Of a stretch of 64,000 nucleotides of DNA, positions 3,925 through 64,000 are shown piece after piece (within the stretch, counting starts at the first letter, position 1; the number at the start of each line of letters is the position of its first letter). The notes below the pieces were generated by a model. The model was not told the origin of the DNA. It was given only the letters and a program-made list of their open reading frames with translations, and did no database searches. Position numbers and translations under genes: made by a program. Location: assembly GCA_043228905.1 (NCBI GenBank), contig JBHGNT010000003.1, positions 9,362,001 to 9,426,000 of the forward strand. Reading direction: 5' to 3'. The DNA comes from Azolla caroliniana. Its lineage: Eukaryota; Plantae; Polypodiophyta.

Positions 3925-6900
3925 TTCGGACGGTATCCAGTTTTCGCTTGTACTCCCCCTCAAGCTTGGCAAGTCAGGAACCGTGAATCCAAGGTCTGAC
4001 AGGAATTGCCGAAGCTTGTTGGCTCCTAGGGCTTTGGTGCCGATGTCGGTTGTCTAAAGATTCGTAGTGATATGTTGAAGGTCGACATCGCCATCCTAAA
4101 CGCACTCTCGAATGTAGTGATAGTGCATTTCGATATGCTTCGTGTGTGCGTGGAACACCGGGTTCCAAGCCAGATAAATACTGCTCATGTTGTCACGGTA
4201 AAGGGGAATTGGATCTTTGATGGGAATGCCCAGATCCTTCAATATCCTCTTAAGCCATACGGCTTCACATGCAGCCACCGTCGTGCCCTTGTATTCAGCT
4301 TCTGTGCTCGGATGAGCGACGATTGGTTGCTTCTTGCTACTCCAAGAGATGGCTCCACTTCCGAGGGAGAAGACGAAACCAGAGGTTGATCGTCGATCGG
4401 CTTTGTACCCTGCCCAATCGGCATCTGTGTACCCCTCGAGTTGAATTGGCGTGGCCAACTTATAGAGAATGCCATAGTCCATTGTTCCGCTCACATATCA
4501 TACCACTCTGTTAGGACAATCCAAATGGATATCTCGTGGCATTTGCATGAACTGGCTAAAAAGTCCGACCGGATATCTTAGGTATGGTCGAGTGATCGTG
4601 AGGTAGATAAGACTACCGATCGATTGTCGATGCTGAGTCGGCTCACACTCTGTGGTGCCAAAATTGGCATATAGTTTGACGTTTCAGTCGAGAGGTGTTG
4701 CCATAGACTTGCACTCAGTCATCCCGAACTTGTATAACAAGTTGAGAATGTAGTGTTGTTGGGAGATCATAATCCCGGCTAGAGTCTGAATTACCTCAAT
4801 GCCAAGGAAATGGTGGAGATCTTTCATGTCTATCATCTTGAATTTGTTGGAAAGGAGGGATTTGACCTTGTTGATGTCGACTAGATGCTCATCTCCAATG
4901 ACCAGATCATCCACGTACAGGATGATGACGATTGGAATTTCAGAATCGCTTCTTACATAGAGAGAATGGTTGGATTTTGACATTCGGAAACTGATTCGAT
5001 GAAGGTATTGTGTTATCTTCGAGTGCCAAGCACGTGGTGCTTGCTTAAGGCCGTAGAGAGGCTTCTTGAGGTGGCAGATGTCTTTCGGATGAATACTGGA
5101 TTCGAAGCCGAGTGGTTGTACCATGTACACCTCCTCTTCTAATTTGCCTTGCAGAAAAAGCGTTCTTGACATTCATCAGGTGGAGGTGCCACCCTTTTGC
5201 TGTTGCAACCGCTATCACAGTTTGCACGGTTGTCATCTTTGCCACCAGGGCAAAGGTCTCTTCATAGTTGACGCCCTGTGTTTGTGCATAGCCCTTTGCT
5301 ATGAGTCGAGCTTTGTAGCAGTTGACAGAACTGTCGGAATTATACTTCACTTTGTATATGCATTTGCAGCCGATTGCCTTCTTGTGCGGTGAGTGAGGGA
5401 CGAGATCCCATGTCTCATTCTTGCTAAGGGCTTGCATCTCCTCGTTCATAGCTTCGACTCATCGGGGATCTTTAGTGGCTTCGACAAAGCTCTCCGGTTC
5501 TCGAACTGCTGCCACCTTCATCATAAAGGCATAGTGGTATGCTATATAGTCGTTGTAGCTGAATCAGCTAACCGAATTCTTCTCTCGGGTGGAGTGACGG
5601 AGTTTCTCATTTGCCGATGTGAGTGCTTTCTCAACTCCGGCTGACCTCATAAGAGGCACATCAAAGCCATTGAACTTACTATCGAGTGAATGAGTTGATT
5701 TGTTGTCGTCGAAGTGATTGTCTTCATATTCCGGCATTTTGGCCTTCCCTTTGTCCATCTTTGGACTTGGCCGAGATGTGCTTTGGTTGCTCGCAGGCTC
5801 TTGTGGTCCGCTCAATCTGGTTCAGATCGGACTCTCTTCGAGTATTGACCGTAGTTGATCATCGTCTTCTGTGTTGTTGAGGTCGTTCGTAGATGGTTCG
5901 GGAGGAGTTGGCTCGAGTTAGTACCATGATGTGGATTCGTCAAACACGACATCCTGACTTACACGAGTCTTCCAAGTAGAGGGGTTGAATCACTTGTACC
6001 CCTTTTGCTCCAGTGAGTACCCTACAAGGATAGATTTCTCCGACTTCGGCTAGAGCTTTTGTCGCTTCTCGTCGGGGATGTGCACCTATGCAATGGAGCC
6101 GAATATCCAAACATGTGACAGATTCGGCTTCTTCCCATAGTATTTCTCGTGCAAGCTGACCTCAGGCACTCCGGATGTTGTCCACCGGTTCATGGGGAAG
6201 ACGGTGGTATTTGCAGCTTCTGCCCAATATGACTTAGGCATACGCTTCTCGTTGAGCATGGCCCGTGCTACCTCGAGGATGTGCCGATTCTTTTGTTCGG
6301 CTACACTGTTCTGTTGTGGTGTGTGTCGGCAAGTGAATTCTCGCCAAATTCCTTCTTTTCGAAGATATGTTGTGAATGCATCAGAGAAGTATTCCTTTCC
6401 TCCGTCTGACCGGAGACATTGTACATGACGCCCAGTTGTCTTTTGGACTTCGCTTTTGAATTTTTGGAAGTGTGTAAACACTTCACTCTTCATCCTCATG
6501 GGAAAGATCCATGTGTATCTAGAGAAGTCATTGATGAAGGTAACATAGTACCGACATCCTCCGAATGTAGCCATTTGTGCCGGTCCCCACACATCCGAGT
6601 GGACTACGTCCAATAGGCCTTTGTTCACGTTCCTCTTCTTCGGGAACAGGTGCCGGTGTTGCTTGCCGAGTTGGCATGCTTCACATACTCCTTCAGTCTC
6701 TTTCTCTTTGAAGGTCGGGAGCCCGATGAAGACTCCTTTTGATTGCATCGCCTTGAGTTTGTTGAGATTGATATGGCCGATTCTTTTATGCCATAGCTCT
6801 ATGTCGGTGTCGGATTTGAGGCCCTTTGCGTACATGGCCGATTTCACCTCATTTGACTCAAGGAGAAACATTCTACCTTCCCTTCAACCCCGAGTGATGA

Positions 6901-8744
6901 GTCGGCCTTCCTTCTCGATGAAGCAACCACCTTGGTTGAATCAAACTTGCATCCCTTGCTCCACTATTTGGCCGACCGAGACCAAATTCTTCGTTATGGT
7001 GGGTACATGTTATACATTTTTTATGGAATTTTGTTTGCCGTCTTCCCCGAATGCGACACTACCAACATGTCGAATAGGATGAGTGGTGTCATCTCTGGTC
7101 TCGACATAACCGGGTCGATCCGGCTCTCGTAAGTCTCGAAACGATTCTTGATAGGACATCATATGGTTTGAAGCACTAGAGTCGACAAACCATACGTCTT
7201 CCAGATTGGAGGCATTAGTCATGGTAGAGGCCGACACAAAATTTTCTCTATGTCTCATCATGAAAATTCCACCAAGGTCTTCATAATCGGAGTTAGTGGC
7301 ATAATTTGTGAGTTGTCGGCTTGTGGAAGCCGACTTGCGCTTATTCTTCCGGCACTCTTCTTCATGATCATGGCCGATTTTTCCGCAATATCCGCATTCG
7401 ATCGAGTTTTGTCGACTTGAACCGGAATAGAAGCTCCTCCTTGCTCTGAAGGTTCCTCGATGGCTTCCGTCTTGTTGTCGAAATTGGGAGTTGTTGTCGT
7501 AAGTGGGACCTCGTCCGCCGCCTCATCCTTGGCCAAATCAGTCTCTTGCTCGGTCACATCCTCTTCCTCCATTCGAATGCGTGTAGAGCATGTGGCCTTC
7601 CGAGGCGTTGCTCCTTGTTCGAACATGATTCTCTTCGACCAATAACATAGATTGAAGATTGAAGAAGGAGGGTGGATTCTCTCCGATGCTAGTACGGCGG
7701 TCCGCATCGCACCGAATCGTGGTGCAAGGCCATCGAGGCATATTTGCACCATTTCTTCATCCTCCACATCGACGCTTATTGAGCCGAGTGCATCACAAAG
7801 CTCCTTGATCTTCAATGTGTAGCGTGTGATGGACATATCCCTTTGTTGGCTGTTGTTCAACTCTTGGCGGGGTTGAAGCTTCCTCGCGGTCGTGTTGGCG
7901 TCGAAAATCTTTCGTAGATTTTCCCACGCTTCCTTCAGCGTCACGGCTTCTTGAATGTAACTGAGCATGTGCTCATGAACATATGTTGCCAAGAAATACA
8001 TTACTCGACTCGCCACTTGCTCCCATGTTGCATAGTCGGCGTCTTTCGGGTCGGGCCGGTTTTCTTGTGCTCCTTTGATGTAGCTCCAATAGACTTGACC
8101 GACAAGGTATTGATGCATCTTGTACTCCCAAGATGCGAAGTTGTTTTGGTCCAACTTCTCTCTAGGGAGAGCGCTCCCCATTTGAGTATTCATGGTGTTC
8201 GATGTAGATTTCTTCCTTCTTCTTCTCTCTTGAATACGAAATATGTAGTCGCACTATGATAGCGATGAGCCGGTTCTTCTTGAACGTTGGCGTAGAGCTC
8301 AACACACGCGGATGGGCGAGATCAAGCCACCAAACCACTCTGATACCATATAAAGAATCGATGGTGATTCTTGTGCAGCGGAATAGACTAGAGATATGTG
8401 TTGTGAGTGTGTGTGTATGAGAGAGAGAGAGAGAGAGAGAGAAACACAAGATAGATAGATTTAAACAACAATAGAATACTAGAGATGATGTATATTACAA
8501 AGGAGATTAACCAAACTAATAACAAAGTAGGAGGAGAGTGTTTTATATAGTCACTCTCTCTCTTCATTAACTACCGAAGCTCATGGCTCATGGGGAATGT
8601 GAAAACTCATTAGTTATGTGTCATAGAATATGATTCTATGACACATAGTTAATGTGCAGATAGGAGTGGTGACTTTTGACCTTTGAGTGCACACTCTCAA
8701 GGGTGTGTTCACATACTAGACTAGGTTAGGCTTGATTCTCTACA
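3925..8744 (-). mobile_element. Ty1/copia element A (degenerate, 3' LTR missing)
   Basis: 5' LTR 8349-8744, iMet PBS TGGTATCAGAG 8338-8348. Gag 7258..8193, protease VWFVDSSASNHM, integrase 6086..6871 (HSDVWGP, LRSDGGKEY), RT 4684..5449 (LYVDD), RNase H 4096..4494 (YTDADWAG). Purine tract near 3953-3962. Confidence 0.92.
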
Positions 8745-20137: not shown

Positions 20138-23100
20138 CCGGCTCGAGTCGACCTTTCCGAATGAATACTGAAGAGTTCGATTTTGACATCACAAAGCCCA
20201 TCCGACACAGTTGCTGCGTGATCTTCACGTTCCAGGCACGTGGGGCTTGCTTCAATCGGCAAACCGCCGAAGTGTTCGTTCCGGAGTGAAATCCGGGGGG
20301 CTGTACCATGTACACCTGTTCCTCAAGCTCACCTTACAGGAGTGCATTCTTTACATCCATCTGATGTAAGTGCCACCCCTTTGCCGCAGCTACCGCGAGC
20401 AAAACACGGATAGTCGCATAGTCGATGCCGTGTTTTTGTGCGTAGCCTTTCGCTACTAACCGGGCCTTGTATCGATTGACCGAGCCATCAGTGTTGTACT
20501 TGACCTTGTACACCTACCTACATCCGATCGGCTTCACACCTTTTGGCACATCAACTAGGTCCCAGGTTTCATTTTCCGCCAATGTGCGCATCTCTTCCTC
20601 CATTGCGGCACGCCAATTCACGTCCTTTGCCACTTCTGCTTAGCTCTCCAGCTCACGCACTTCTGCTACATGGGTCATGTACACATAGTGATGCGCCATG
20701 TACTCGTTGTATCCGAACTGTACAACAGGGTTCTTCTAGTGGGTAGATCGGCGTATTTGCTCATTAGACGTCATTGAGGCTTTCTTGGCTGACGTGGACT
20801 TCGTTCTCAAAGACCCATCATCGCTCTTCTCAGAGTTGGATTCGCGTCGATCCGACTCGCCCTTATCCGTGCCATACTCCGACATCTTCTTCTTCCCTTT
20901 CTGCTTGTGCGTAAACCGTCTCCTCGGTTCCTTACACGGGAACAACACGGATGAGTCTCCACCACTCGTTGTCTCGTCATTTGGGTGGCCATCTTGGCCC
21001 AACCCTGCATTCGGCAAACTCAACCGAAATGAGATCGGACTCTCTTCGAGGGTCCCGATTTCACCATCATCCGGAGGCACTTCAGCCTCACTGACCTCAT
21101 CGTCAGAGCTCGGATTGGAGTTGAGGTCCAAAGTCGGAGGAAAGTACCAGGACATGGACTCGTCAAACACAACGTCGCGGCTTACACGAGTTTGTTTGGT
21201 TCGGGGGTTATAGCACTTATAACCCTTCTACTCGTCCGAATAGCCAACTAAGATACACTTCTCAGCTTTCGCGTCCAACTTCCTCCATTTCTCCTTCAGC
21301 ACATGCACATACGCAATGCTACCGAAAATCCTCAAGAGTGCCAGATTCGACTTCTTTCCAAAATATAGTTCATTTGGCGACACTTCTCCATTGGCAGAAG
21401 TCCGATTCTATAAGTAGACAAGCATTCTCACGACTTCAGCCTAATAAAATTTTGGCATATGCTTCTCTTCAAGCATTGCCCTACCGCTTCTTCAATTATC
21501 CGATTCTTCCGCTCGGCTACACCGTTCTACTCCGGTGTATATCTACATGAGAATTCGCGTCGAATTCCCTCCTTCCGTAGATAACATGTGAACTGGTTGG
21601 AGAAGTACTCTGTCCCGCCATCAGACCATAAGCATTTGATCTTGCGCCTTGTTTCCCTTTCTGAAAGACTCTTCACCTCCAGGAAACATGCGAACACTTC
21701 GCTCTTCTTCGCGATCGTGCATGCCCACGTGTGCCGAGTGAAATCGTCGATGAAGGTTACAAAGTAACGGCTTCCACCGAGACTCACGTTCTGTGCCGGT
21801 CCCCACACATCCGAATGGATCAAATCCAGTGGACTTCGACTACGATTACGCTCATTGGGGAATGGCAGTCAATGTTGTTTTCCCATATGACAGGCTTCGT
21901 AGATTTGGGCATTATGGCCCCGAAATTTCGGCAATCCGAACACAATGTTCTTCGTCTGCATTTCACGAAGCCATGGGAAATTTATGTGGCCGAACCGCTT
22001 GTGCCATAGGTCGATGTCCGATTCGACCTTCTGTCCTTTCGCGAACATAGCGGTGTCCACATTGTTGGTTTTGAGGATAAACATCCTCCCTTCTCGGCGC
22101 CCTTCTGCTATGACTTTGCCTTCTTCTTCGATGAAGCAACCGAGATGCGTGAATCGAACTTGCATACATTGGTCGACGATCTGACCGACCGACACAAGGT
22201 TCTTTGTTATTGTCAGGACGTGCAACGCATTCATGAGTTTCCCTTTTTACCCGACCTGGTTGAGGGGAACTTTGCCGACATGTTAGATGGTATGCGGGGT
22301 GTCATCTCCCGTTTCGACAACCCCTCGTGATTCTGGCTTCTCCAAGTACGAGAACCATTCCTCCTGATTTGTCATATGATTTGACGCTCTGGAATCCACA
22401 TACCACACCTCGCTCAATTTCGAGGTGTTCACGTGTCGAATACAAATGTATAATGGACGTATTCACACTATCCTCTTAGAGAGCCCAAGTTCGGGCTATT
22501 TCTGTAAATAACATAAAGGACAGTCACCCTAAGTGAGTCACTATATACTGTGTGATCTCTTCCGCACTGACGGCCTTGTTCATTCCCTACATTTGGTATC
22601 AGAGCTTGGATGTCCTTCATCCCGCTGCCGGCCGCCATTCGAATCTTTGGATCACAACATTCTGTTTTTTTTTTCTGTTTTCTATTTGAAGAAACAGAGA
22701 AGAGAGAAGAAGAAGAAAAACGAGGCTTGCATCTCATCGCGCTAGATCATCTTCACTTGGAGTAAGCCAACCGGCTGTACTCTGTTCTTCATGATCGTAA
22801 CCGCTCGAGGTGAAATCCCCTTGTGCAACATTGACACGATCGTGCTCCACTCGGTTAAACGGCATCTGAACAGGTCACTGAACACTGCTTGCCGCCCGTT
22901 GTAACCACTCGGTGCAGATCGGTCTCAAGAAAACAACCCCAATTCGTGCTTCATCTGGCTGATCGACATTCGGGAGGATCAATTGGATCCGTCTCTCTCG
23001 TCCCTGCAGTCACCCAAAGCAGAATCGGTTTCAATAATCGGTATTTGGCATATACATTCGGAAGTGAACCGGGCTCACTCCGACTCGGCAACATTCGGGA

Positions 23101-47255: not shown

Positions 47256-50200
47256 CATATCATCCACGTAGAGGAGTATCAAAAAATCTCCTCCGTCGAA
47301 TTTCTTCAGAAACACACAGTGATCAGCCTGCGTCTTGTGGTACCGTTGGTCGGTCATGAAATAGTCGAACTTCCGGTACCATTGCCAGGGGCTTGCTTCA
47401 ATCCCTATAAGCTCTTCCTCAATCGGCACACCATATCCTTTTGGTTGTTGCATGTAGATCTCCTCTTCGAAGTCACCATGGAGGAACGTCGTCTTGAGGT
47501 CTAGTTGCTCTACCTCGAGGTCCATGCTTGGCTCTATGCTCAGCACCGTCTGGATGGAAGTCATCTTAACTACTAGGGCAAAAATGTCATCGAAATCCAC
47601 TCCCTTCTTCTAGTGGAAACCCTTCACTACAATTTGGGCTTTCTATCTCAGCGGGTTTCCGGCATCTGTCGGTTTCTGTCGGGAACAGGTGCGATTTGCG
47701 GAAACATGTATGGATCTATTGTCGGTTATGAACAACAAACAACATAGACAGAAAGATCAAATAGGCGTAGAATTACTCGGTGCAAGCTCTAATGCAAAGC
47801 TTGATTACTTCGTTCTCACTTTGTCTCCCTGAGATACAATACACAAACTCTTCGTCTCTCTTTCACTCGTCACTCTATACAATGTTAGGTATTCGCTTAT
47901 GTACTAAGCCCTAACTTATTGACTAGTTCACACTTGGATGGATACAACTTGGAAGGAGCCAGCCTTTTATGCCAACAAAATCCTCCGTAAAAGGACTACT
48001 CTTTCTTGCATGTACAAGTATTTGGGGTTATCTCCCCTATAAGCCTAGATTACAAAATTGATCTAAGTTTATATGTTACAAATCGGTCGGCATGCAGCCG
48101 AGTCGGCTGATGTATAGGATGTGTCGTTATTGTTCCAATTAGGTCTTACCTTCTGCTCCTCGTTCGGCTTTCTTCTACTCGGTCACTTGTCGTAGCCCCA
48201 TTTTTGTCCTTAGTGCTACGAAGTGTAGATCTGGGAGTGGCTTCGTCAAGCAATCGGCGATGTTCACCTCGATGTCGATCTTCCAGACTTCGAGTTTCTT
48301 TTTGTTTACAAGCTCCCGAATGTGATGATGTCGCACCTCAATGTGCTTCATCTTCGCATGATAGACAGGATTGTTTGATGAGGTGTATTGCGCTCTGTGA
48401 GTTGCAATAAATGGTCGGCGCTGGTCGGTCGTTTCGGCTTGCAGTTCCGAAGTCGGTAGTCAGTCGGTGCTTTAGATGCTGCTATGTACTCGGCTTCTGT
48501 GGTAGACAGAGTTGTGCACTCTTGAAGTTTCGACCTCTATGATATCACCCCGCAACCATAGGTGAAGATGTAGCCTGATGTCGATTTCCAATTATCTGCA
48601 TTTCCGGCATAGTCGAAATCGGTGTAGCCTTCGACTTCGGCTGAGGTTGTCAGTCCGAAAGTCAGCAGTGCATTCAAGGTTCCTTTCAGATACCTAAGGA
48701 TGTGCTTGATAGCCTCCCAATGCTTCTTTCTTGGGTTTGACAAGTACCGGCTGACCACCCCTACGACATAGGCTAGGTCGGGTCGGTTCGCCACCATAGC
48801 GTAAATGATACTTCCTACTGCCGATGCGTAGGGTATCATTCCATTAAGCTCTCTCTCCTTGTCCATCGAAGGAGAGTCTTTGTCTGATATTTCGATCGAC
48901 GTCAGAAACGGTGTCGGCGTTGGCTTCGCGTTCTCCATGTTGAAGCGCTTCAGCACCTTGCGGATGTATTCAGACTGGGAGAGTCAGAGAGTTTTGGTTG
49001 TCCAATTTTGTTCTATCCTCATGCCCAGTATGTGTCGGTCTTGTCTGAGTTCCTTCATCACGAACTTTTCATGAAGGCTCAGCTTTAGCTTCCAATCTCT
49101 ACTTGATTACTTCCTGCAATCAACATGTCGTCGATGTATAGGATCAGATAGATCCTGAACTTGTCGGCTAGTTGCCAAACATACATGCATGGGTCGGAGT
49201 CTGATCGGTTGTATCCAAGCTGCCGTATGTAGGAGTCAAACTTCTGGTACCACATTCTAGGCGTTTGTTTTAGGCCATATAGACTTTTCTTTAGTCAACA
49301 TACGAGGTGACTGTCCTCCCCCGTCTCTGTGAAACCTGCCAGTTGAGACATGTATATTGTCTTCTTCCAAATCTTCGTGTAGGAATGTCGTCTTTACGTC
49401 CATCTGCTCGAGCTCTAGATCTTTTGTCACCACGACTCCTAGTAGAAGTCGGAGGGTGGTCATCTTGACTACTGGTGAGAAAATCTCGTCGTAGTCGACC
49501 CCGTATTCCTGTTTGAATCCTTTTGAGACAAGTTGAGCTTTGTACTTGGGTTTCTCTGAGTCAGATACATACTTGTATCGGAAAATCCATTTGCAAGGTA
49601 GCGGCTTCCTTCGAGCTGGTAGTTTGACCAACTCCCATGTCTGATTCTGATGAATCGTGTCCATTTTGGATTTCATGGCTGGTAGCTATGTCTCAGCGTC
49701 TGGTGCGGCCATAGCTTCTTCATAGGTGCTTGGTTCGCCTGCATCCGTGTAGTTGATGTAGTCGAGGCCCAGTTGGTAGAACTCTGTTTGCCTTCGAGCT
49801 TGTCCATATCTCTTAGGTGCCGAGATGTTTGGTTCGGATCCTTTGATTAACTCTGTTGGTTGATCAATATTAGTTGAACCATCTGTATCCGGAGTCTTGT
49901 TAGGTGTCCCGCCCCCAGATTGGGATTTCGACGGTGTCTGGTTATCCTCCCCTGTGGTTGTCGTCGACTCTTTTCTAACTTGTCTCTTGGTGACTTTGCC
50001 TTTATTGATCCTTGTCGATTCAATTGTTGGCGATTCAGTGTCGACAGGGAAGTTGTCAACTTGTTGGAGTTAGACTGTTTGTCGAGTCCCCGATTCGGCC
50101 TAGTGGGTCAGTCCTTCTATGACAGTGTTGTCATCTTCGAAGGATACCTTCTTACCAACTATTTTCTGTTGGTTCTGCTGAGAGAAGATAGAGTCTTCAT

Positions 50201-51597
50201 TGAACACTACGTCGCTGCTCTGGATCAATTTCCGGTGCTCAGGCTCCCATAACCGGTAATCGAAGTCCCCATTGGTTCCATAACCGAGAAATATGCACTT
50301 TGTTGCATGGGGTGCCAACTTCGTCCTTTGGTCTCTGGGGATGAACGCGTAGGCTTCGCATCCGAATATACGGAGCCTATCGTAGGTCGGTTGTTTGCCT
50401 GACCATAGTGCATGTGGCACTTCGAGCCTGATTGCTCTTGACGACACTAGATTTATCAGGTACACTGCCGTCTGCAATGCCTCGACCCAGAATTCCAGCT
50501 TCAATCCGGGTTGCTGGAGCATTGTCGTCACCCTCTCCTGGATCATCCTGTTGATCCATTCTGCCACTCCATTTTGCATGGGTGTGTAGGGAACGGTCTT
50601 TTGGTGTTGGATCCCTTTTCCGGACAAGTATTCTTTGAAGGCTTTGGAGGTGTACTCACCTCCGTTGTCGGATTGGAGTGTCTTCACTCTGTATCCCGAT
50701 CAGTTCTCCACTTCAGATTTCCATCGCGTGAAGACCTTCAGCGCTTTATCTTTGGACTTGATGGAGTATGCCCAAACTTTCCGTGTACAGTCATCTGCGA
50801 ATGTGATGATGTACTAGGAGCCTCCTAGTGATCGCTTTGGCATGGGCCCACATATGTCTGTGTGCACAAGCTCTAGGGGTTGTCGTACCGTCTCGTGGTA
50901 GAGAGAGTGCGGACTTTGGGTCTGTTCCCCATATCATCAATGCCCGCAGAAGTCCATCTTTGCCTAGAGTTTCGGGATATAGCCAACCGACATCAGTCGA
51001 TCAAGTCCAGCTTGAGACATGTGGCCAAGTCGGCCATGCCATAAGTTCAGGTCGGTTTTCTCGGCTATGTTCACACCCCTTCAGGGTTGATCGCCATCAA
51101 TGGGTATAGATTATTATACTTGTACCCACTGCCGATTTTGAGGTTTCCTCGGCTGATCGCCCATGTCGACTCGTGTAGCGTCGTTCTATACCCGTCTTCG
51201 GCTAACATGTCGATGGAGACCAGACTCCTCTTTAGATCGGGTATGTGCCGAACTCGGTGCAGGGTTATTATGTTCCCATTTGGCAATCTGATGGGAACCT
51301 CCCCAGTTCTAGCTATCTTGCACTCCTGCTCGTTTCCCAATCGGATTGTGCCGCTGGCGTTGGCTTAATAGTTCGAGAACCATTCAATGTTGGGGGTCAC
51401 ATGAAATGTGGCACTAGAGTCTAGTAGCCACGTGTGTGCAACTTGTGCACTGTAGAGGACTTCTCTGATCATTAAATCCTCTAAGGAGAGGATTTCTCCA
51501 GATCGGGTGTCAGCAACGTTGATCTGGTTGCCGACTGGAGAGTAGTCCGAGTCGGAATGTCCCTGATTCCGTTCAGATCGCCGACCACTCTCTTTTC

Positions 51598-52087
51598 TTT
51601 TAATGACCAGTAGTCAGAAACATTGTGGCCAGCTTTCCTGTAGTGTGTGCGGTACTCGCTGGATCGACCCGTTTTCGACTTCGACCGCTGTCGGTCTCCC
51701 CTTGTTTTCGATCGGCTGTAGCGTCGACCGGTTCTGTCGGCTTGTTCTTTTGTTTGACTCTGTTGGACAAACGACTCGGTTGAGTGATGGCTTCTGCCGA
51801 CTCATCGATGGTTAGTCCCATCAATTTTCACCTGATGTCCTCTTTTAATGACCAGTAGTCAGAAACATTGTGGCCAACTTTCCTGTAGTGTGTGCGGTAC
51901 TCGCTGGATCGACCCGTTTTCGACTTCGACCGTTGTCGGTCTCCCCTTGTTTTCGATCGGCTGTAGCGTCGACCGGTTCTGTCGGCTTGTTCTTTTGTTT
52001 GACTCTGTTGGACAAACGACTCGGTTGAGTGATGGCTTCTGCCGACTCATCGATGGTTAGTCCCATCAATTTTCACCTGATGTCCTC
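51598..52087. repeat. 245-bp tandem duplication in the gag zinc-knuckle region of F
   Basis: Near-identical ORFs at 51600 and 51845, offset 245. Confidence 0.9.
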
Positions 52088-53253
52088 TGTGAGGACTTGG
52101 TCGATTGTTTCGTCCAAGTTTAGGATCGGTCGGCTATTGGCGTATGTCATGAAGAATACCTACCAACTCGCCGACAAGCTCGATAGGAGGGCAAGGGATT
52201 TCACTTCTTCTTCGAATTTGATCCCTTGTGACGAGAGCTCAGACAACACTCGACTGAAGGTGTTGATGTGGGAGGTTGCCGGGTCGGTCTCTCTCATCTT
52301 CATGTTGAACAATTGTTTGATTAAAATCAATTTTGAAGATGAGGAATTCTTTTTATAAACTGTCTGTAGCTTCTCCCACAATGAGAACGTTGTCGTCTCT
52401 TTCGTCATTCTGAAATAGATGTTTTCGGCCAGATGCATTCAAATGGTGGAGTGTGCGATTTCGTCCATTGATCTCCACTCCTCGGCTGTCATTGAAGCAG
52501 GTTTTTCGTTGTGCCAAATGGCTTCGACCTGTCTTCGAATGATCAACACATCTTGTATCATCTCCTTCCACAAGGCAAAGTTTTCGCCATCAAATTTTCT
52601 GATTTCAACTCTTGTTCCGCATGTTGAGGCCATATTCTTTTTGTGAACTTGACATTTCTGTCCTGGTCTTTTCTTTCAGCTTCTTCTGTTGTCTGTTGCC
52701 GCCGAAAAGCAAAGATTCGCTCTAATACCAGTTGTCGGGAACAGGTGCGATTTGCGGAAATGTGTATGGATCTATTGTCGGTTATGAACAACAAACAACG
52801 CAGACAGAAAGATAGAATAGGCGTAGACTTACACAATGCAAGCTCTAATGGAAAGCTTTATTACTTCGTTCTCACTCTCTCTCTCTCTGAGATACAATAG
52901 GTGAAAGCATGAGAGTGGAAACAATTAGCTATGTCCTTGACATAGCTAATTAACTATGCTAAAAGCTACCATTGATAAATAGTCATTTTAGTAAAAAGCC
53001 ATCATTAATAAATTAACTATGCAAAAAACTACCATTGAAACTACTAGAGTGTTTTAATTACATATGTAAATGAGGGCCATAAATGTGCAACATAAATTGA
53101 TATGTGCACCATAAATGTGTACCATAAATTATATATCGAATTCCTAGGTCCATTATGCATGATCCTTTGCCACATCACGTAGGTCATCTCTAGTTGAGTA
53201 TTGTGGGTTAGTCGCTACCACTGTTGCTAAACCCTATCGAGTCCACCTGCAAC

Positions 53254-53830
53254 CACTCTACACTCAAGGGCCGCTACTGTGCGTTCCAAGCATCATCAAA
53301 GAGCTGCTCAATCTGACGGGGTTCTCTTCTCTGTGACACTCTACACTCAGGGGCCGCTACTGTGCGTTCCAAGCATCATCAAAGAGCTATTCAATCTGAC
53401 GGGGTTCTCTTCTCTAGGCCACTCTACACTCAGGGGTCACTACTGTGCGTTCCAAGAATCATCAAAGAGTTGTTCAATCTGACGGGGTTCTCTTCTCTGT
53501 GCCACTCTACAATCAGGGGTCACTACTGTGCGTTCCAAGAATCATCAAAGAGCTGTTCAATCTAACGGGGTTCTCTTCTTTGTGCCACTCCACACTCAGG
53601 GGCCGCTACTGTGCGTTCCAAGCATCATCGGTAACTGTTCAATCTGATGGGGTTCTCTTCTCTGTGCCACTCTACACTCAGGGACCACTATTGTGCGTTC
53701 CAAGCATCATCAAAGAGTTGTTCAATCTGACGGGGTTCTCTTCTCTGTGCCACTCTACTCTCAAGTGCCTTCTCTGTGCGTTCCAATCATCATCGGTAAT
53801 TGTTCAATCTGATGGGGTTCTATCCTCCAT
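53254..53830. repeat. 83-bp subterminal tandem repeat (~7 copies)
   Basis: Unit CCACTCTACACTCAGGGGCCGCTACTGTGCGTTCCAAGCATCATC... ORFs recur at 53279, 53362 and 53445. Confidence 0.9.
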
Positions 53831-54156
53831 TGTCATCATTCTACACTCAGTTGCCACTACTGTCCAGTCCTGGATTGCTTCCACATTTCGATTTGACGGA
53901 GTTCACTCATCCAACAGCAACATTCTACACTCAGTTGTCGCCATTGGTCGGTCTTGGATCGCCTCCTCAACTGTTCGATCCAACGGAGTGAACTCCTCTA
54001 TTGTTCGGTCTTGGATTGCAATAACTTTTCTGTCTATTGATTATCTTGTGTATTGTTGTGTCTAATCTTGTGTATTGTGGAATATTTTTGTGTATTGTTG
54101 TTGCCCATAGCCATCTTAAATACTTGTTTTCTTTTCTGGAAATTTAGGGTTTTAAT

Positions 54157-57100
54157 ATGTCCAGCCAAATGGAAGGGGAAGAAGGGTGTTTAGAACTACC
54201 CCTCAATGATCATAAGGATAGGGATGATGCTATCAGGACACAACAAGCCATACGAAACTATTGGGCAGAAGAGAAAAGGAAACATCGTCAATTGTTGAAG
54301 GATACGAAAGCCACACTCAGTAAAGGTAAGGATAGTTTAGCTGAGAATGTAAGTAATTCGACTACCATCATAGAGAGAAAGGTTGTAGACTATTTCAATG
54401 TTCAAACCAAGCACATCGGCAATGAAGAAAAGAAGGTAGTACTTTATGGAATATGTAATGATCCATCGATAAAGGAGTTAGTTGATTGTGATGGTCTTAA
54501 TGCAAACATATCATCTATTTTAGTAAATAATCTTCGTAATAGTTTCGTATCCATGAGCAGCTCAGAAGATGATCTTGTCTTAAAAAGGTCTAGTCTATTG
54601 ATGTTACTTAATAGTGATGTTGACGATATAAACATCAGTGAGCTATCTAAGGTAATTGGTGTTAGTAGAAAAACAGTGTACAATACAATGAACCGTATAA
54701 TTTCCTCGGGTGAAGGAACTAGTCTACTAAAGCTAACTACAAGATGTAAGCCAATGACACCCATAACATTTGAAATCAAGGATGTAATCACAATGTTTTG
54801 GACTAATGAGAGTAGGGTTTCCCCCAATAAAAAGGATTTATGTAGGAAACATGTTGGAAGAAATCAATACGAGGAGCATCCCATTCATCTTCTTGATGTA
54901 CCTCAGGTATTTACATTTATCTCAACATTTGTTTTGACTCTACACAGAAAGTTAATTAGCTTAGTTAGCAGAAAAGCTAATTAGCTTATCAGTTACATTT
55001 ACCTCAGTTAGCTACTAGGATAGCTACTACATAGGTAACTGGCTACTCTCAATAGCTACTACTATGCTAGCTAATTAGCTATTCTCAATAGCTAATTTAG
55101 GTACTACCAGATAATTAGCTACCAAAATAGCTAACTAGCTACCATGATAGCTAACTAGCTACCAAGATAGCTAATTAGCTACTAGGATAGCTAATTTCGT
55201 TATTACCAGCTAATTAGCTACTAGGAAAGCTAATTAGCTACCATGATAGCTAATTAGCTACTAGGACAACTAATTAGCCACCATGATAGCTAATTAGCTA
55301 CTAGACCATCTAATTAGCTACTAGGAAAGCTAATTAGCTACCATGATAGCTAATTAGTTACTAGGACAGCTAATTAGCCACCATGATAGCTAATTAGCTA
55401 CTAGACCAGCTAATTAGCTACCATGATAGCTAATTAGCTACTAGGACAACTAATTAGCTACCATGACACCTAATTAGCTTATCAGTTACATTTACCTCAG
55501 TTAGCTACTAGGATAGCTACTACATAGGTAACTAGCTACTCTCAATAGCTACTACCATGATAGCTAATTAGCTATTCTCAATAGCTAGTTTAGGTACTAC
55601 CAGATAATTAGCTACCAAAATAGCTAACTAGCTACCAAGACAGCTAATTAGCTACTAGGATAGCTAATTTCATTATTACCAGCTAATTAGCTACTAGGAC
55701 AACTAATTAGCCACCATGATAGCTAATTAGCTACTAGACCAGCTAATTAGCTACTAGGAAAGCTAATTAGCTACCATGATAGCTAATTAGCTACTAGGAC
55801 AGCTAATTAGCTACCATGATAGCTAATTAGCTACTAGGATAGCTAATTAGCTACCATGATAGCTAATTAGTTACTAGAATAGCTAATAAGCTACTAAAAT
55901 AGCTAATTAGCTACTAGAATAGCTAACTAGCTACTAGGATAGTTAGCTAGTTACGAGAATAACTAATTCCCCTTTATTACGCAGGTCGATTTATTTATTA
56001 GGTTCAAACGAATGCATCCAAATATCAAAGTTCAACTACGAAAATTCGAGTCTCTTAAGCCACACTTTGTGAGACGCTTAAAGGATCGATACGCATGTTG
56101 TTGCATTTACCATGTACAGATGGGTTTTTGGAAGGACTCTGTTAATCTACTACGTCACCATAGCGCATCCCTAACTAATACAGTTTGCACATGTGGGTGC
56201 CCGATCTGTCGATCAAGCCCGCAAGAGGAATGTAAATCATCTGAGCACGTTATCTCTTCCATGAGTTATTTATTAGATTCAATATTGTGTCCGAGAGAAA
56301 CTGACGCTATCTTCCATATTCATAAATGTGTCATGGGTTTATGTCAAGATTGTGGCCCTACTAGATTTAGGTGGTCTCCAAATGAATTGAGTAGTGAAAT
56401 GAATTGTGGCCCTACTAGATTTAGGTGGCCCTACTAGATTGTGTTAAGATTGTAAAGTTCTTTGAGTCAGTGAACACCAATTTCGAAGGAAAGGTGTGTA
56501 AAAGAAAGGATCTAGTTCGGAAGATGCTTAAAGCAAGGGATTTGGTGTCTCTGTTTGTAGTATCTCTAGGAAAGTTCATTAAACACAACTTCATTTATTC
56601 ATGGCAGGCCCATCAATTTAAGACTTGCATATCTAATTTCCCAAATGATGTAGTAGTCTCAGTAGTAGATTTCGCAAAGAATTATACTTTCAAGCAGCAG
56701 AATGAAATTCAATCTATGCATTGGTGTTCAGTTCAGGTAACCATTTTTGTGCACATAACATATTTTCGAGTTTCAGGTGATGTTAAAAAAGTAATTCATT
56801 TCTTTATTTCCGATGATAAAAAGCATGATACCTTGTTCGTCCAACAGTGTTTTAAGTTACATTGGCAGTGGTTATTAGCTCAACGTTTGGAGCTTACTCA
56901 ACATTGGGTCTTGTCTAACGGAGCTGCGTCACAATTCAAGGCTCGACGTCCATTTTATTTTGTGGGGAGGTATCCTGCTATAACAGGTTTGGAGATGAGA
57001 TGGAATTTTTTTCGGTCTGGCCATGGTAAAGGTGAACATAATGGTGCAGGGGCTGTTATAAAGCGGGCACTTACCCATGAACAACTAAAGACAAATGGTG

Positions 57101-57867
57101 TGCACATGAATTGTGCATCACATGTAGTTGAATTTTTAAGAACAAATATGTCAACGAGTGCAACAAGTGTTTATTCCTCGCAAGTCCGAGATATCAAACG
57201 TGAATTTTGGGAAGTGAAGATAGATGAAGTAAATAGGGAGAAGACCTGGGAGTGCCAAGGAATTCCCGAATTGCAATCTCTGCATGCTGTTCGCGGTTAT
57301 TCCAGGTTGGATGGTCATTGTATTGCGGTTAGAGAATTGACTTGTTTTTGCTTCCATTGTGTGCAGGGAAATTGGAGATATTGTCTAAACAAAGCATACA
57401 TTCAGAATTGGGAGTATCACACTCTGAATGATAAGGAAGCAGTTGATGGAGAAACAGGGCAGAATGCTGACTTCACATATGAGGGACTTGGAGATACTTT
57501 GAGTGATGTCCTGAACGTTGGGGATAACTTCGCTGTAAATGCTGAAGAAGGCAATTCAGAGGGTGTTGATTTCTATATATTGAAGTGCACGGTTAGTAAA
57601 CAGTGTGCAAGGCAGAATATTGTAGATGCATAGGAAAATTTTGTATCTGCCGGGACATTCTACATCAAAGGCATTTTTTATGCAAAACTAGATGACTACG
57701 AATATGTGTACATGCTGTTAGAAGACAAACCAACGGCGTACATGTACTCTCATTTGCTCAGGTGCATCAACGTCCCAATGTCAGAATACAATAGCTGCTC
57801 AGGTTTATACACTGTTGGTGGTAATGTGTATGAATGTATTTACAATAGTATGCCATGGAATTTGTAG
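54157..57867 (+). pseudogene. Sola2-like DDD transposase, 2 exons (54157-54906, 55985-57867), disabled
   Basis: Phase-0 GT..AG intron 54907-55984 joins DVPQ to VDLFIRFKRMHP. HTH-like LSKVIGVSRKTV, RYACCCIYH, and core motifs VDFAKNY...EIQSMHW...SDDKKHD...SNGAASQFK...WNFFRSGHGKGEHNGAGAVIKR. Frameshifting microduplication ~56404-56440, in-frame TAG at 57631. Confidence 0.8.
54950..55965. repeat. Palindromic minisatellite (TAGCTAATTAGCTA core) filling the transposase intron
   Basis: Dozens of ~20-bp units built around a perfect 14-bp palindrome. Confidence 0.95.
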
Positions 57868-60001
57868 CTACAAGTAGCAATTACCATGTTCTCTTGTAAA
57901 ACAAACATGTATTTCGCGAAAACAGTTAAATAAATTCGTTTGAGAATCAATTTCTTGTATACAGTCTGCTTTCTGTGCTTCTTTCTCAATAAAATCATGT
58001 CTTTTTTGTTAAGTTTTAAGTTATAAGTTATAATGAAATAGTCATCAGTAGCTAATTAGCTGTACAAATGCAGCTAATTAGCTGTCAATAGCTAAATAGT
58101 CATCAATAGCATGAAATCAACAATCTGCAACATATTCCTCAAATTACACAGTAGATAAGTACAATGGGAACAAGTAATTAAATTCTTCATTGAATAATGT
58201 CATCTCTTTACATATTTATAAATTACCATTGGAAATGTCTACAAATCTCCTATAAACAGCTAAGCTCTTGCTAGTCAGTGGAATGAGTCTACATATATTA
58301 TCCGCATATCGAGCTCGGTATGGAGTCCACAACCATGCACCTAGTTGGCAGCTCACTGTTTGCACCAGGTACTGTTCAGGCATTTCCTCGGGTAGAATGA
58401 GACAGCATCTCTGAATATTGTAGTTCTGGAAATGTTCTGTATCCAAAGTCAATGTATTGTTGGCATTATATTCAGGCCAAGTAGCCCAAAAATCAGAAAG
58501 TCTCTTGAATCTTGTAGTTTCCATTTGCTCACAATTTTCTCGTGCCCATTGACCTTTAAAACGACTTTGCCATTTTGGGAAGAATCTTGCTAAACACTTC
58601 CACACATCTAATTTTGGTTTTTCACTCCAAATAAACAAATCAAAGTATTGCACAACCCACTCTAGAAACTAATTCGGGTCCCTCCTTGGCTGCATATATC
58701 TCACACTCATCAAGACTATATCAAGCTCCAAGATCAAGGCTCTTCTTTCGACTTCTAGTGGTTTAGGTTTCCATTCTTGAAATTGAGCCGCTGTTACACC
58801 ATTTTCTGGTAGGACACGATCAATCTCAATCAGCTCAGGTTCAGCCGACACAACTGGCGTCCTTTTCCTCTTCAAACCCCTAGTCGACTGTGTTGAGCCT
58901 GGCTTCACATTCTGCTGCTCTTGTTTTGTCGACTTAGTTATCAATCCTTGGATTACCTCGGTGCATGTAGCTACTGATCTGCTCGATATCAGCCCACTAG
59001 TATCACATGCTGCATCTACCTGCAACACCAAGTCATCCGTGCAACATGCCGCATCTACCTGCAACACCAAGTCATCCATGCAACATGCTTGATCAACTTG
59101 TGTGACCAGATCACTTGTGTCAGTTGGTACATCTACTTTCAAGATGGGGCCCTTTAAACATGCCGCAACATCAACAGTATCCACACTGCCATTGGCCTTA
59201 CGAGCAATAGAATCAAACCCTTTAGACTCTGCAACATCAGAAAACACCAACATATTCACACTCCCAAAGTAACTAACAGTCTCACAAAACAACATCCTGA
59301 ACATCAAAGAGTTTCAGTCATAGAATAACACTCTTCAAATTATCTTGGAAAAACATCATAGAGTTCCATTACATAATGTGGATCAAGCAACAACCAATCT
59401 GAGGTTTTACTTGTCCAACAGGATAGTAAAACTTCATAAAACCCTAGCAAAATCCCTAAGCTAACAATCATATCAAACTAAACAGTATTTCGCTCCACTA
59501 CGTCTGGGCCCCTTGACCGAGTAATTGGTCTTGTTCCCGATCGTGGCCCCTTCTTCAGCCTTTTTCTGGTCGGTTGCCCATTTAGCCTTGCTTCTTTCAC
59601 CCAATGCGCAGGTGTGTCCTCCTCCGACAACCTTCCCATCACCTTTTCTAGAACTAGCTTTTCAAGTACAGAGGGATCTGTTTGGACATTTTCAGTAGTT
59701 GGGCTCGGTGGGGTGGAATCAAGGTCTTGAGATTCGAAGAAATGTTCCATCAAGTGTTCATAAACACTGTTATTGTGAACCTCAATTTTACATGTTCTTT
59801 CCACTATTTCATGGCATTTCACATCGTTGCCTAATTCAATACACTGTTCCAAAAGAATAGGGTCGAGCTGATCTGAAGGAGATGTGATAGCAAGACTCTT
59901 ACTTTCAGCCACGTTGGCAGTAGTATCCTCATCTATTGCAGCGTCATCAGCACCAGACACATTATGTGTCGTCCTTAATCCACAAGATTCTACAATAACA
60001 T

Positions 60002-61460
60002 GGCAGCTATTTAGGATAGCTAATTAGCTACTTTACTAAACTATGGTAGAAGCTAGGATAGCTAATTAGCTAGTACGATAGCTAATTCGGATAGCTAATT
60101 AGCTACTTTACTCAACAATGGTAGTAGCTAGGATAGCTAATTAGCTACTTTACTCAACTATGGTAGTAGCTAGGATAGCTAATTAGCTACTTTACTCAAC
60201 TATGGTAGTAGCTAGGATAGCTAATTAGCTACTATGGTAGCTAATTAGCTACTTTACTCAACTATGGTAGTAGCTAGGATAGCTAATTAGCTACTTTACT
60301 CAACTATGGTAGTAGCTAGGATAGCTAATTAGCTACAAGGATAGCTAATTAACTAGTAGGATAGCTAATTAGCTACAATGATAGCTAATTAGCTCCTTTC
60401 TCAACTATGTAGTAGCTAGGATAGCTTATTAGCTACTAGGATAGCTAATTAGTTGCCAGTAGCTAATTAGCTACTAGGATAGCTTATTAGCTACTTTACA
60501 CAACTATGGCAGTAGCTAATTAGCTACTAGGATAGCTTATTAGCTACTTTACACAACTATGGCAGTAGCTAATTAGCTACTAGGATAGCTTATTAGCTAC
60601 TTTACAAAACTATGGCAGTAGCTAATTAGCTACTACGATAGCTTATTAGCTACTTTACACAACTATGGCAGTAGCTAATTAGCTAGTAGGATAGCTAATT
60701 AGTTGCTAGTAGCTAATTAGCTAGTAGTAGCTAATTAGCTTTTTTACACAACTATGGTACTAGCTAATTAGCTAGTACCATAGCTAATTAGCTACTAGGA
60801 TAGCTTATTAGCTACTTTACACACCTATGGCAGTAGCGAATTAGCTATTAGGATAGCTAATTAGCTAGTAGGATAGCTAATTAGCTACTAGGATAGCTAA
60901 TTAGCTGCCAGTAGCTAATTAGCTAGTAGGATAACTAATTAGCTTTTTTACACAACTATGGTACTAGCTAATTAGCTAGTACCATAGCTAATTAGCTACT
61001 AGGATAGCTTATTAGCTACTTTACACACCTATGGCAGTAGCGAATTAGCTACTAGGATAGCTAATTAGTTGCCAGTAGCTAATTAGCTAGTAGGATAGCT
61101 AATTAGCTTTTTTACACAACTATGGTACTAGCTAATTAGCTAGTACCATAGCTAATTAGATAGTAGCTCATTAGCTGCCAGTAGCTAATTAGCTACTTTA
61201 CACAACTATGGTACTAGTTAATTAGCTATGAGTAGCTAATTAGCTAGTAGCTAACTAGCTGCCAGTAGGATAGCTAATTAGCTACCACTTAGCTAATTAA
61301 GTACTGTAGTAAACTATGGCAGTAGCTAATTAGCTAATAGGATAGCTATTAGCTGCTTTAATCAACTATGGTAGTAGCTAATTAGCTACAACGATAGCAG
61401 CAAAATAGTTTCCATACTTTTTACGTCTTAGCTAATTAGAAAAGACTAAGCTTATTAGCT
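60002..61460. repeat. Palindromic minisatellite (TAGCTAATTAGCTA core) filling a cargo-gene intron
   Basis: Same core as the transposase intron, lying between donor 61474 and acceptor 59990 (both phase 1). Confidence 0.93.
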
Positions 61461-62814
61461 ACAATATGGTATACCTGTTAGTTTTCTCCACTCATTTGGT
61501 AGAGCTGTACTGCAATCTCCCAAACAGAATGCAGCAATTCGACAGGCATGTTGAAAACAAAGCAGATGGTATGTGTGGTTGCATGGTTGTAGGGGAACCA
61601 ACAAAGATGCAGTTTTGTCCTCCACACCTAACCCGCAAGCGATGCAACATGCTTGAACTGTCAATAAATCATTTTCTGGTTCTCCTTCATTTGGTAAGGG
61701 AGCAAGAATGTTTAGGTCCAAATCCTGTCTGGTCCTTACCATTCCCTCCACAAAATGTAGCTGCTTCTTAAGGCAGCTAACTACCTGTTCTTGATGAATG
61801 TATTGTTCCTTCAATGCAATAGAGAAATTTACCGATTAATTATTCCTGTCTGAGAAAGATACACCAACTTTGCTCAGGAATCGTTAACTTACTTGAAGCA
61901 TTTCCAAATTGTAATCTGCAACAATATTTACACCTAGAAGGTCCAGGTTCATTGAATGAACCTAGATCTCTATTTGCAATTGTATTTTATGCTGGGGATC
62001 CAGTGGCCCCTCTAATTCAAGCTCCTTTTACGCAACCTATTCCAGATAATGCTTGATTAGCACATTTTACCCTTAAAGTTATTTATAACACAATCACATA
62101 CCATCAAAACAATACTTACCTGAATCTTATTTCTAATCGTTGTAACAACGGAAGTAACTTTGCTCTCCATTGCAAAAGCCATTGTGGCTTTCTCTAAATC
62201 AATCTTAAAAAATGCCAATGTCTCACAGGCTTCATGAACATTGTTTAGCATATAGCTAACCAATGTCTCACATGTATCATCGACATTGGCTTTCCTTGGG
62301 TGTCGGTGTGGTGTATGCCCCCGGTCTTGCTGGGAATCGGCAGTTGCATCAACAGCTGCCATGCTCCAAAATCTGTCTATTTTTTGTGCCAAGGTCCCCA
62401 TCTTTCGGCATCTTTTTATCGATGCCTCACCATAGACTGCCCAAGCTACCCTATACATTTCAGGGTCTCTGGATTCCTTCGTTGTTTTGCAGTACTCATA
62501 TGCAAATGCTCTAGCAAATGAAACTGACAACTCATTGTTGACTGGGATCTCCTGATGAACTTTCTGGTGCAGCCTCATGCAGTCATCGTACAAGTCGGCT
62601 CGTACATGCTTCAGCTTGACCTTGCCTTTGACTCTAGGCACTGTATATACTGTCATCCAGTCTACATCATTGATCAATTTATCACTTAGGACAGTAGGGT
62701 CAACACCCTCGAGTGACAGACCATAGGTGTTGTGGAAGTCCTCCTTTGTCTCGCAAAATTTTGCAAAGTTTAGCACTCTCGGATACGGAGGAACGAGCCA
62801 TCTGAAATGATATT

Positions 62815-63370
62815 TCAAAAATCAGAAATAGTGCAAAATCAGAATATGTCAGAATTAGAAACCCCAATCAACAACAACAAAAATAGTGTAAAATCTTTAA
62901 CTTAGCAAATCAGAAACCCTAATCATAATTTGTATTCAGAAATTTGAAATGAGAAACCCTAATCAAAATCTGTAATCAAAAGTTTGAAATGAGAAACCCT
63001 AATCAAAATCTGTAATCAGAAGTTTGTAACTAGAAACCCTATTCAGAAATTCTAATCCAAAATTTATAATCAAAAACCCTAATAAGAAATTTCAATCAGA
63101 AACCCTAATCAGAAATTTCAATCACAAACCCTAATTAGAAATCCTAAACAGAAATTTATAAACAAAAACCCTATTAAGAAATTCTAATCTGTAATCAAAA
63201 TTTGTAACCAGAAACCCTATTCAGAAATTCTAATTAGAAATTTATAATCAAAAACCCTAATCAGAAATTTCAATCAAAAACCCTAATCAGAAATTTCAAT
63301 CACAAACCCTAATCAGAAATTTATAAACAAAAACCCTAATCAGAAATGTCAATCAGAAACCCCAATCATC
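62815..63370. repeat. AAACCCTAATCAG telo-box-like repeat in intron 1 of the cargo gene
   Basis: More than ten AAACCCTA motifs embedded in AATCAGAAAT units between donor 63413 and acceptor 62802. Confidence 0.85.
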
Positions 63371-64000
63371 ACTAAAGACAGGATTAAACACAAAAAAAGT
63401 AATATAAACACACCTGCTGCTACTCCCCGATCTACGAGACATCCTTGTATGGGACTCCAAGGACTTCGCCCTATTCGATTTTGGAGAAATATGAATCGAC
63501 ACCAAAGTTCAGACAGTAGTCAAAAAGAAAAACCAAATGTTTGGGGTTTCTGTAACTAAAACATACCTGGACGATGATCGAATGGGTTCTGTGTTGTAGC
63601 TCTCAATCTGCAATGCCGATTTTCTGTTGCTACGGGAGCTACGTCTGCGTTCGTGCTCTGAGTACTCCATCTGCGTTCAAAATCAAACTTAGGCTAAACA
63701 GGAAATTGATGACATTGAAGTCGACCTTAGATGATGGTGCTATTCCCCAAGTTCCACTACGTCTGAAACGGAAGTTCAAATATTTGAGTTTTTTCATAAA
63801 TTAGTTTTTCAAATATTTGATTTTCCCACAAAAAAGACTAGCTAAAAAAATAGCTAATTAGCTATGGCCATTTTAGTAGCTAATTAGCTATAATAGTGTT
63901 TCCACTCGCATGCTTTTACCCAATACACAGACTCTTCGTCTCTCTTTCACTCATCACTCTATACAATGTTAGGTATTCATTTATATACTAAGCCCTAACT

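Follow-up and report, generated by a model that had tools for sequence, protein, structure and literature searches.

What kind of mobile element interrupts a long terminal repeat (LTR) of a Copia retrotransposon in the fern Azolla caroliniana, and could it still move? The stretch examined, hereafter the window, is the whole of 64,000 nucleotides of contig JBHGNT010000003.1 (assembly GCA_043228905.1, positions 9,362,001 to 9,426,000 of the forward strand). Positions 52900-63921 of the window hold a real DNA transposon of about 11 kb, which is bounded by terminal inverted repeats (TIRs) and structurally whole, and which is a genetically dead copy. We consider it highly probable that the element belongs, as a dead copy, to a fern family of two-gene cut-and-paste transposons of the Sola2 type that is present in high copy number. 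A first-pass annotation of the window had called the element complete; this was correct for its structure only, and both genes proved to be broken.

Ends, target site, and duplicated bases

The 24-nt inverted ends at 52900-52923 and 63897-63920 agreed at 22 of 24 positions, with the left end reading GGTGAAAGCATGAGAGTGGAAACA, and they were the only TIR matches in the 64-kb window, against 0 expected by chance. The 24-bp TIRs noticed in the first-pass annotation were therefore confirmed, the end of the family itself being 25 nt. The sequence CAATA flanks the element on the left (52895-52899) and on the right (63921-63925). When the flanks were joined in silico, with the element removed and one CAATA kept, the product aligned across the joint to window positions 47677-47916 with 91.3% identity over 242 bp, and this paralogous empty site had one CAATA, at 47837-47841. 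The repeat pair around the empty and filled sites brackets a minus-strand Copia retrotransposon with matches to gag (52160-52438), integrase (50100-50687), and reverse transcriptase (49257-49676). The repeat copy with the empty site, which had earlier been placed at about 47831, is thus the sister LTR of the host Copia element, and the single AATA at 47838-47841 is the empty target site. The intact empty site in the sister LTR indicated that the Copia element was in place before the insertion occurred. The host Copia element also contained, at 51596-52085, a 245-bp tandem duplication with copies 99% identical.

The length of the target-site duplication (TSD) was assessed with other ends of the family. 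Metagenome contigs were scanned with the TIR, which yielded 22 contigs, each consisting of one family end plus its own flank (14 left and 8 right ends; the flanks of L008 and L021 are related, so that approximately 20 independent sites are represented). In the oriented contigs, the base before GGT was G in all 22 ends, and the flanks beyond it were unrelated. Judged from these contigs, the terminal repeat of the family is the 25-nt sequence GGGTRAAAGCATGMGAGTGGAAACA, and the element ends are GGGT...ACCC. The presence of this G in 22 of 22 ends indicated that the C at 63921 belongs to the element, as its final base, and lies outside any duplication, which removes the reading of CAATA as a 5-bp TSD. 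The right TIR of the window copy has the full 25 nt on the minus strand (63897-63921), including the terminal C. The left end (a|GGTG) was the sole end without the third G, and the left TIR on the plus strand (52900-52923) lacks the first G of the family end. The duplication is very likely the 4-bp AATA, with its left copy at 52896-52899 and its right copy at 63922-63925, the left end having lost one G of its GGG run.

The first-pass annotation had proposed a complete element of a cargo-bearing lineage with a transposase that makes 5-bp CAATA duplications. CAATA does flank the element to the left and right and occurs a single time in the empty site, and with ends of the form GG...CC no loss of a base is required. 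However, the third G was found in the other ends whatever the flank, the related families described below have 4 bp, as do published Sola elements (PMC10741241, PMC3627910), and the target base before AATA would also be C by chance in 1 of 4 cases. We regard a 5-bp TSD as very improbable, and the apparent 5-bp duplication as an artefact produced by the placement of the element end. The accompanying remark that a reading of AATA or AAT needs one terminal base to have been lost or mutated held true, and 4 bp and 3 bp are the sole remaining readings. For a 3-bp AAT duplication, in which the A at 52899 would be the terminal G after a G-to-A transition, a substitution suffices and no deletion is needed, and G-to-A and C-to-T changes dominate the private differences of this copy, among them the two Asp-to-Asn codons and the change of TGG to TAG treated below. 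Nevertheless, two related families have the same GGGT start: the one that begins with GGGTGAAAGTAC (L001) showed TTGT on both sides, a perfect 4-bp duplication into which neither 3 nor 5 bp fits, and in the one that begins with GGGTATATGCATG (L027), the flanks TCCA and TTCA fit 4 bp with one transition and do not fit 3 bp. In addition, AATA preceded GGG more often than any other 4-mer in the other ends (three times: L008, L015, and L021), and runs such as GGG commonly lose a single base, by mutation or through an assembly error. A 3-bp TSD is unlikely on this evidence, and the 4-bp reading is preferred. The 4 bases before GGG in the 22 ends were 82% A/T; Sola elements have been published with a DDD transposase and 4-bp TSDs (PMC10741241), and the TSDs of Sola2 in Dictyostelids are AT-rich (PMC3627910).

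No left end could be paired with a right end among the 22 metagenome contigs, only L006 and L005 having a possible common TTTT, which was unverifiable; likewise, the second element end was not found at loci L002, L003, L004, L028, L029, L030, and L032. Two end contigs with high coverage, L022 and L023, matched the ends of the window copy at 96.7% identity. The contigs L008 and L021, which came from different samples, had the same left-end subtype, and their flanks were 82% identical up to the insertion point; either the insertion preceded a duplication of the host sequence, or two related genomes have it in common.

Transposase gene and predicted fold

Two convergent genes, both with introns, were found between the ends, as had been stated in the first-pass annotation, and the GT..AG introns preserve the reading frame in both. 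Gene 1, on the plus strand, encodes the transposase. Its exon 1 (54157-54906, 250 codons, donor cag|gt) contains a helix-turn-helix (HTH)-like segment with a match to HTH_11 at E 8.9e-5, which is under the Pfam cut-off, and is homologous to the N-terminal parts of related proteins, including annotated liverwort proteins in which the exon-1 part is joined to the catalytic part. The intron (54907-55984) keeps the frame and is full of 20-bp palindrome arrays. Exon 2 (55985-57867, with the stop codon at 57865-57867) encodes zinc-finger-like motifs, a DDD core, and a BAH-like C-terminal part, and an intact transposase would have approximately 880 residues.

A whole-library search with the transposase returned 4936 representatives at E<=0.001. 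The nearest relatives were from ferns (Adiantum) and Klebsormidium, followed by many from animals, and a second search added the liverwort proteins. In an alignment of 40 sequences, the catalytic aspartates D302 (in DFAENY) and D427 (in HGKGxxDG) were invariant, and D386 (in SDG) was conserved in at least 90%. The related proteins read DFAENY / WSDGAASQFK / HGKGEHDG, whereas the window copy reads DFAKNY / QSMHW / SNGAASQFK / HGKGEHNG. The motif set given in the first-pass annotation, DFxENY / QxxHW / SDGxxxQ(F/Y)K / HGKGxxDG, therefore did not describe the window copy itself, which has D, N, and N at the catalytic triad. Near-invariant Cys and His residues were also seen on either side of the catalytic core (C185, H505, C525, C527, C530, and C538 in the numbering of P0157, an intact fern relative), and they point to two zinc-binding modules in the protein. 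In a separate observation, the second half of a chimeric protein, P0058, matched window positions 29104-29388 (62%) and 22471-22590 (33%), outside the element, and these matches probably represent another repeat family.

An AlphaFold model of P0157, with a predicted local distance difference test (pLDDT) score of 81.6, showed the strand order of RNase H with the three aspartates in the canonical places. Residues 283-477 of the model aligned to retroviral integrase cores (Z up to 10.8, root-mean-square deviation 3.1-3.7 A over 135-159 residues), and the core also aligned to Mos1 (Z 9.4) and IstA (Z 9.0). In the model, the family thus has the DDD triad on a predicted RNase H/integrase-like fold.

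The C-terminal segment at about 57475-57867 of the window corresponds to residues 575-704 of P0157, and the model of this domain had a pLDDT of 88.6. When 48,161 chains were searched exhaustively by structure, BAH domains took all of the 16 top places (DNMT1, ZMET2, EBS, ORC1, AIPP3, and others), yet the Z scores were only 5.0-7.0; the Foldseek list likewise consisted mostly of BAH domains, at E 0.009 or weaker. These models suggest that the C-terminus of the plant transposase folds like a BAH (chromatin-reader) domain, and such a domain could steer integration by chromatin state. The animal relatives, for example those of Lineus and Ptychodera, have the same catalytic core at approximately 30% identity and with all three aspartates. 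In place of the plant BAH-like domain, however, many of them (P0085, P0036, and others) have an OTU-like cysteine-protease end with a DGNC motif, for which the Pfam OTU matches were weak and under the cut-off.

Second gene, palindrome arrays, and decay of the copy

Gene 2 lies on the minus strand and encodes a RING-like and a NIF/FCP1-like part. A conserved N-terminal domain is encoded at 62057-62818, with 41% identity to the counterpart at locus L004 (E 4e-30) and 33% to that at L027. It is joined to the next exon (61475-61814) through either a short intron or a frameshift; this exon has a RING-H2-like C3H2C3 pattern and aligns to residues 419-529 of the L027 exon. A GT..AG intron that keeps the frame and is full of palindrome arrays (59990-61474) is followed by a middle exon for an acidic/basic linker (59485-59989), whose splice sites preserve the frame, by a further frame-keeping GT..AG intron (59297-59484), and by the last exon (58216-59296), which encodes a low-complexity linker and the NIF/FCP1-like domain. 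Gene 2 of L027 starts with M-S-R-W, whereas the window reads F-R-W with no in-frame ATG at 62790-62830 of the minus strand. Within the same 62790-62830, an ATG follows directly after a possible acceptor (tttcag|ATGG), one base out of frame.

The eight-ligand RING pattern was present in both the window and L027, with Pfam RING matches far under the cut-off (E 0.083 and 0.036). For NIF (PF03031, cut-off 21.8 bits), the scores were 32.9 at L004 and 38.2 at L027, and the window exon, at 17.9, was below the cut-off; the last exon of the window was nevertheless homologous to the NIF exon of L031 (E 5e-11). The catalytic DxDx(T/V) motif was replaced by DLNNV in L004, DMNGV in L027, and ELDIV in the window. 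From these sequences, the NIF domain of gene 2 probably has a phosphatase-like fold without the standard chemistry, and the degenerate motif suggested that the gene 2 product is probably no standard phosphatase.

Homologues of gene 2 were found in the same place and orientation beside transposases 37-53% identical to that of the window at L002, L004, L027, and L031, and the RING part was found also at L001 and L003. In Adiantum, a 541-residue minus-strand neighbour is annotated beside the homologue of the transposase. The retention of gene 2 homologues beside diverged transposases indicated that gene 2 is a trait of the family and not the cargo of one copy. The co-occurrence of both genes was borne out at these loci, and of the cargo-bearing lineage proposed earlier the recurring second gene stood, while its 5-bp TSD did not.

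The palindrome TAGCTAATTAGCTA had 78 matches in the window, all within the element: some lie close to its two ends, some in the space separating the genes, and others in the two introns that carry arrays. Left subterminal copies of this type lie at 52925-52960. Upstream of gene 1, subterminal 83-bp tandem repeats (6.9 copies) occupy 53253-53821, and upstream of gene 2 a tandem array of 13/26/40-bp repeats occupies 62907-63368. Other families of the lineage had arrays of different short palindromes (GGTACC-like, CCACTTGCAAGTGG-like, and GGTAGCTACC-like) in or near gene introns, at 4743-5622 and 9356-9817 of L002, 5723-6492 of L004, and 7707-8258 and 14294-15406 of L027, and the position of the array relative to the RING exon varied among families. 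In the runs of four organisms, between 2925 and 8217 contig pieces per run matched the 6-kb right half of the element, with similarities from <90% to >99%.

Several changes in the window copy affect its genes. On the plus strand, the second catalytic Asp (D in at least 90% of the 40 aligned relatives) has become Asn, codon AAC, at 56917-56919, and the third (invariant in these relatives) has become Asn, codon AAT, at 57040-57042. A Trp codon of the relatives is a TAG stop at 57634-57636 (TGG-to-TAG), and a small tandem duplication in exon 2 shifts the frame near 56400-56440. In gene 2, an in-frame stop that does not occur in the family lies at 58669-58671 on the minus strand, the window having A at 58671 where every aligned family contig has G. 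All three point changes of the transposase (the two Asn codons and the TAG) were G-to-A transitions, and among contigs aligned to 58001-64000 the differences between window and family were mostly an A/T in the window where the family has G/C. The loss of two catalytic aspartates, together with the frameshift and stop in the transposase and the stop in gene 2, indicated that the copy is dead.

Placement among known transposons and proposed mechanism

The order of the transposase motifs, compared with published Sola2 sequences, and the predicted integrase-like fold support the Sola2-like nature of the transposase that had been proposed in the first-pass annotation. In a by-eye comparison, the published Sola2_DFa-2 and PPa-1 sequences (supplement of PMC3627910) read DFKEN / WSDGAKHFK / HGKSDVD, in the same order as here, and by our own count the catalytic blocks are separated by approximately 84 and 41 residues here and by approximately 87 and 43 in DFa-2. 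Pfam searches of all open reading frames of the window and of the intact relatives gave no transposase family; Pfam has no Sola model (PMC5751038). A lead to DUF7869 was not reproduced by hmmscan. CACTA/EnSpm and KDZ elements are defined by CACTA-type termini, a TSD of 2-3 bp (8 bp in Zisupton), and transposase domains of their own in Pfam, and neither definition agrees with the GGGT termini and the lack of Pfam transposase matches.

The statement in the first-pass annotation that Sola2 is described mainly from animals and usually has no large accessory gene was not supported by the literature. The 2009 description of Sola drew on Hydra and further species, among them plants (Bao et al., as cited in PMC6839031 and PMC10741241), and a 2023 review, which counts it among the plant TIR superfamilies, records it from moss and gives sizes to >15 kb (PMC10741241). 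Published Sola2 elements also include some of 12-15 kb in which Fanzor1 is present as a second large gene (PMC3627910). In ferns, Sola appears in the repeat table of Ceratopteris (PMC6890710) and is abundant in Azolla (PMC6786969). For the conifer Cupressus, a 2026 preprint calls Sola2 the most abundant DNA-transposon superfamily (10.64898/2026.07.23.736688). The elements annotated in these plants are probably of the same kind as that described here, being from the same plant groups and abundant, but they are given as repeat-table entries without gene content, ends, or TSD (PMC6786969, PMC6890710, 10.64898/2026.07.23.736688). The Dictyostelid elements DFa-2 and PPa-1 resemble the present family in the DDD blocks, in transposase length (888 residues, against approximately 880 here), in having TIRs and, very probably, short AT-rich TSDs, and in being large (11-15 kb) and able to carry a second big gene. 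They differ in that the family described here has GGGT termini, a RING/NIF-like second gene instead of Fanzor1, a BAH-like end, and palindrome arrays in introns. Transposons with two genes are well known in plants: PIF/Harbinger with a Myb-like ORF, CACTA with TnpA and TnpD, MuDR with mudrA and mudrB, and VANDAL with VANA and VANC. These likewise have an accessory gene and a transposase within TIRs and repeated subterminal motifs, but their transposase superfamilies and accessory proteins are unrelated to those of the present element, and their TSD lengths and termini are different.

The lack of a Pfam model, and GGGT termini unlike the Dictyostelid Sola2 ends in PMC3627910, would accord with a separate, undescribed DDD superfamily that is Sola2-like in its motifs only. 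The three catalytic blocks, however, agree with published Sola2 in both wording and spacing, Sola termini are described as very variable (PMC10741241), and repeat annotation of ferns and conifers already reports Sola and Sola2, so that we judge a separate superfamily improbable. That gene 2 is a fragment of a host gene captured by one copy (Pack-type cargo) might be thought of since RING and NIF are common host domains, but with the same layout beside such diverged transposases at L002, L004, L027, and L031, and the RING part in L001 and L003, this is scarcely credible. Four points weigh against the preferred reading of a dead copy of a two-gene Sola2-type family. The Sola2 label is a probable one, drawn from the by-eye motif comparison and the predicted fold; no second complete copy of the exact family was available, the 4-bp TSD being drawn from the literature and from the related families L001 and L027; in a further related copy, L031, the flanks AAGC and AATT were unlike each other and uninformative on TSD length; and RNA runs with the element were not found, the splicing being deduced from GT..AG sites, continuity of the frame, and homology.

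In the mechanism that we propose, an active member of the family would encode a transposase (approximately 880 residues) that combines an HTH-like region at the N-terminus with zinc-binding motifs, an RNase H/integrase-like DDD core, and a BAH-like domain at the C-terminus. This transposase would bind the 25-nt ends and probably also the nearby palindrome, excise the element, and reinsert it at AT-rich sites with a 4-bp duplication. The convergent gene 2 would supply a protein in which the conserved N-terminal domain is combined with a RING-H2-like finger and with a NIF/FCP1-like domain whose catalytic motif is degenerate; that this protein acts as a helper or against silencing is a guess. The window copy would have been inserted at AATA in one LTR of an already integrated Copia element, and later decay, mainly through G-to-A and C-to-T changes, would have left it with two Asp-to-Asn replacements, a Trp codon turned into a stop, a frame-shifting duplication, a stop in gene 2, and a missing terminal G.

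As an ordinary decayed member of an abundant family, the window copy has little meaning in itself, and the interest lies in the architecture of the family. Sola2 had been represented in fern and conifer genome papers by mere lines in repeat tables, and the present analysis sets out how the elements end, which targets they prefer, how their genes are built, and which residues are catalytic. Literature searches, which did not cover Repbase, found no paper describing the RING/NIF-like gene, the palindrome arrays, or the BAH-like domain. We tentatively suggest, as a possibility with the balance of probability against it, that the BAH-like Sola2 transposase, the RING/pseudo-phosphatase partner, and the kilobase arrays of the end-proximal palindrome in the introns of both genes act as one coordinated system, conserved between ferns and more distant plants, which may jointly steer integration or shield the element from silencing. 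The RING/NIF-like gene, the BAH-like domain, and the palindrome arrays are relevant to the question of how DNA transposons survive in fern genomes, which are very large and heavily methylated.

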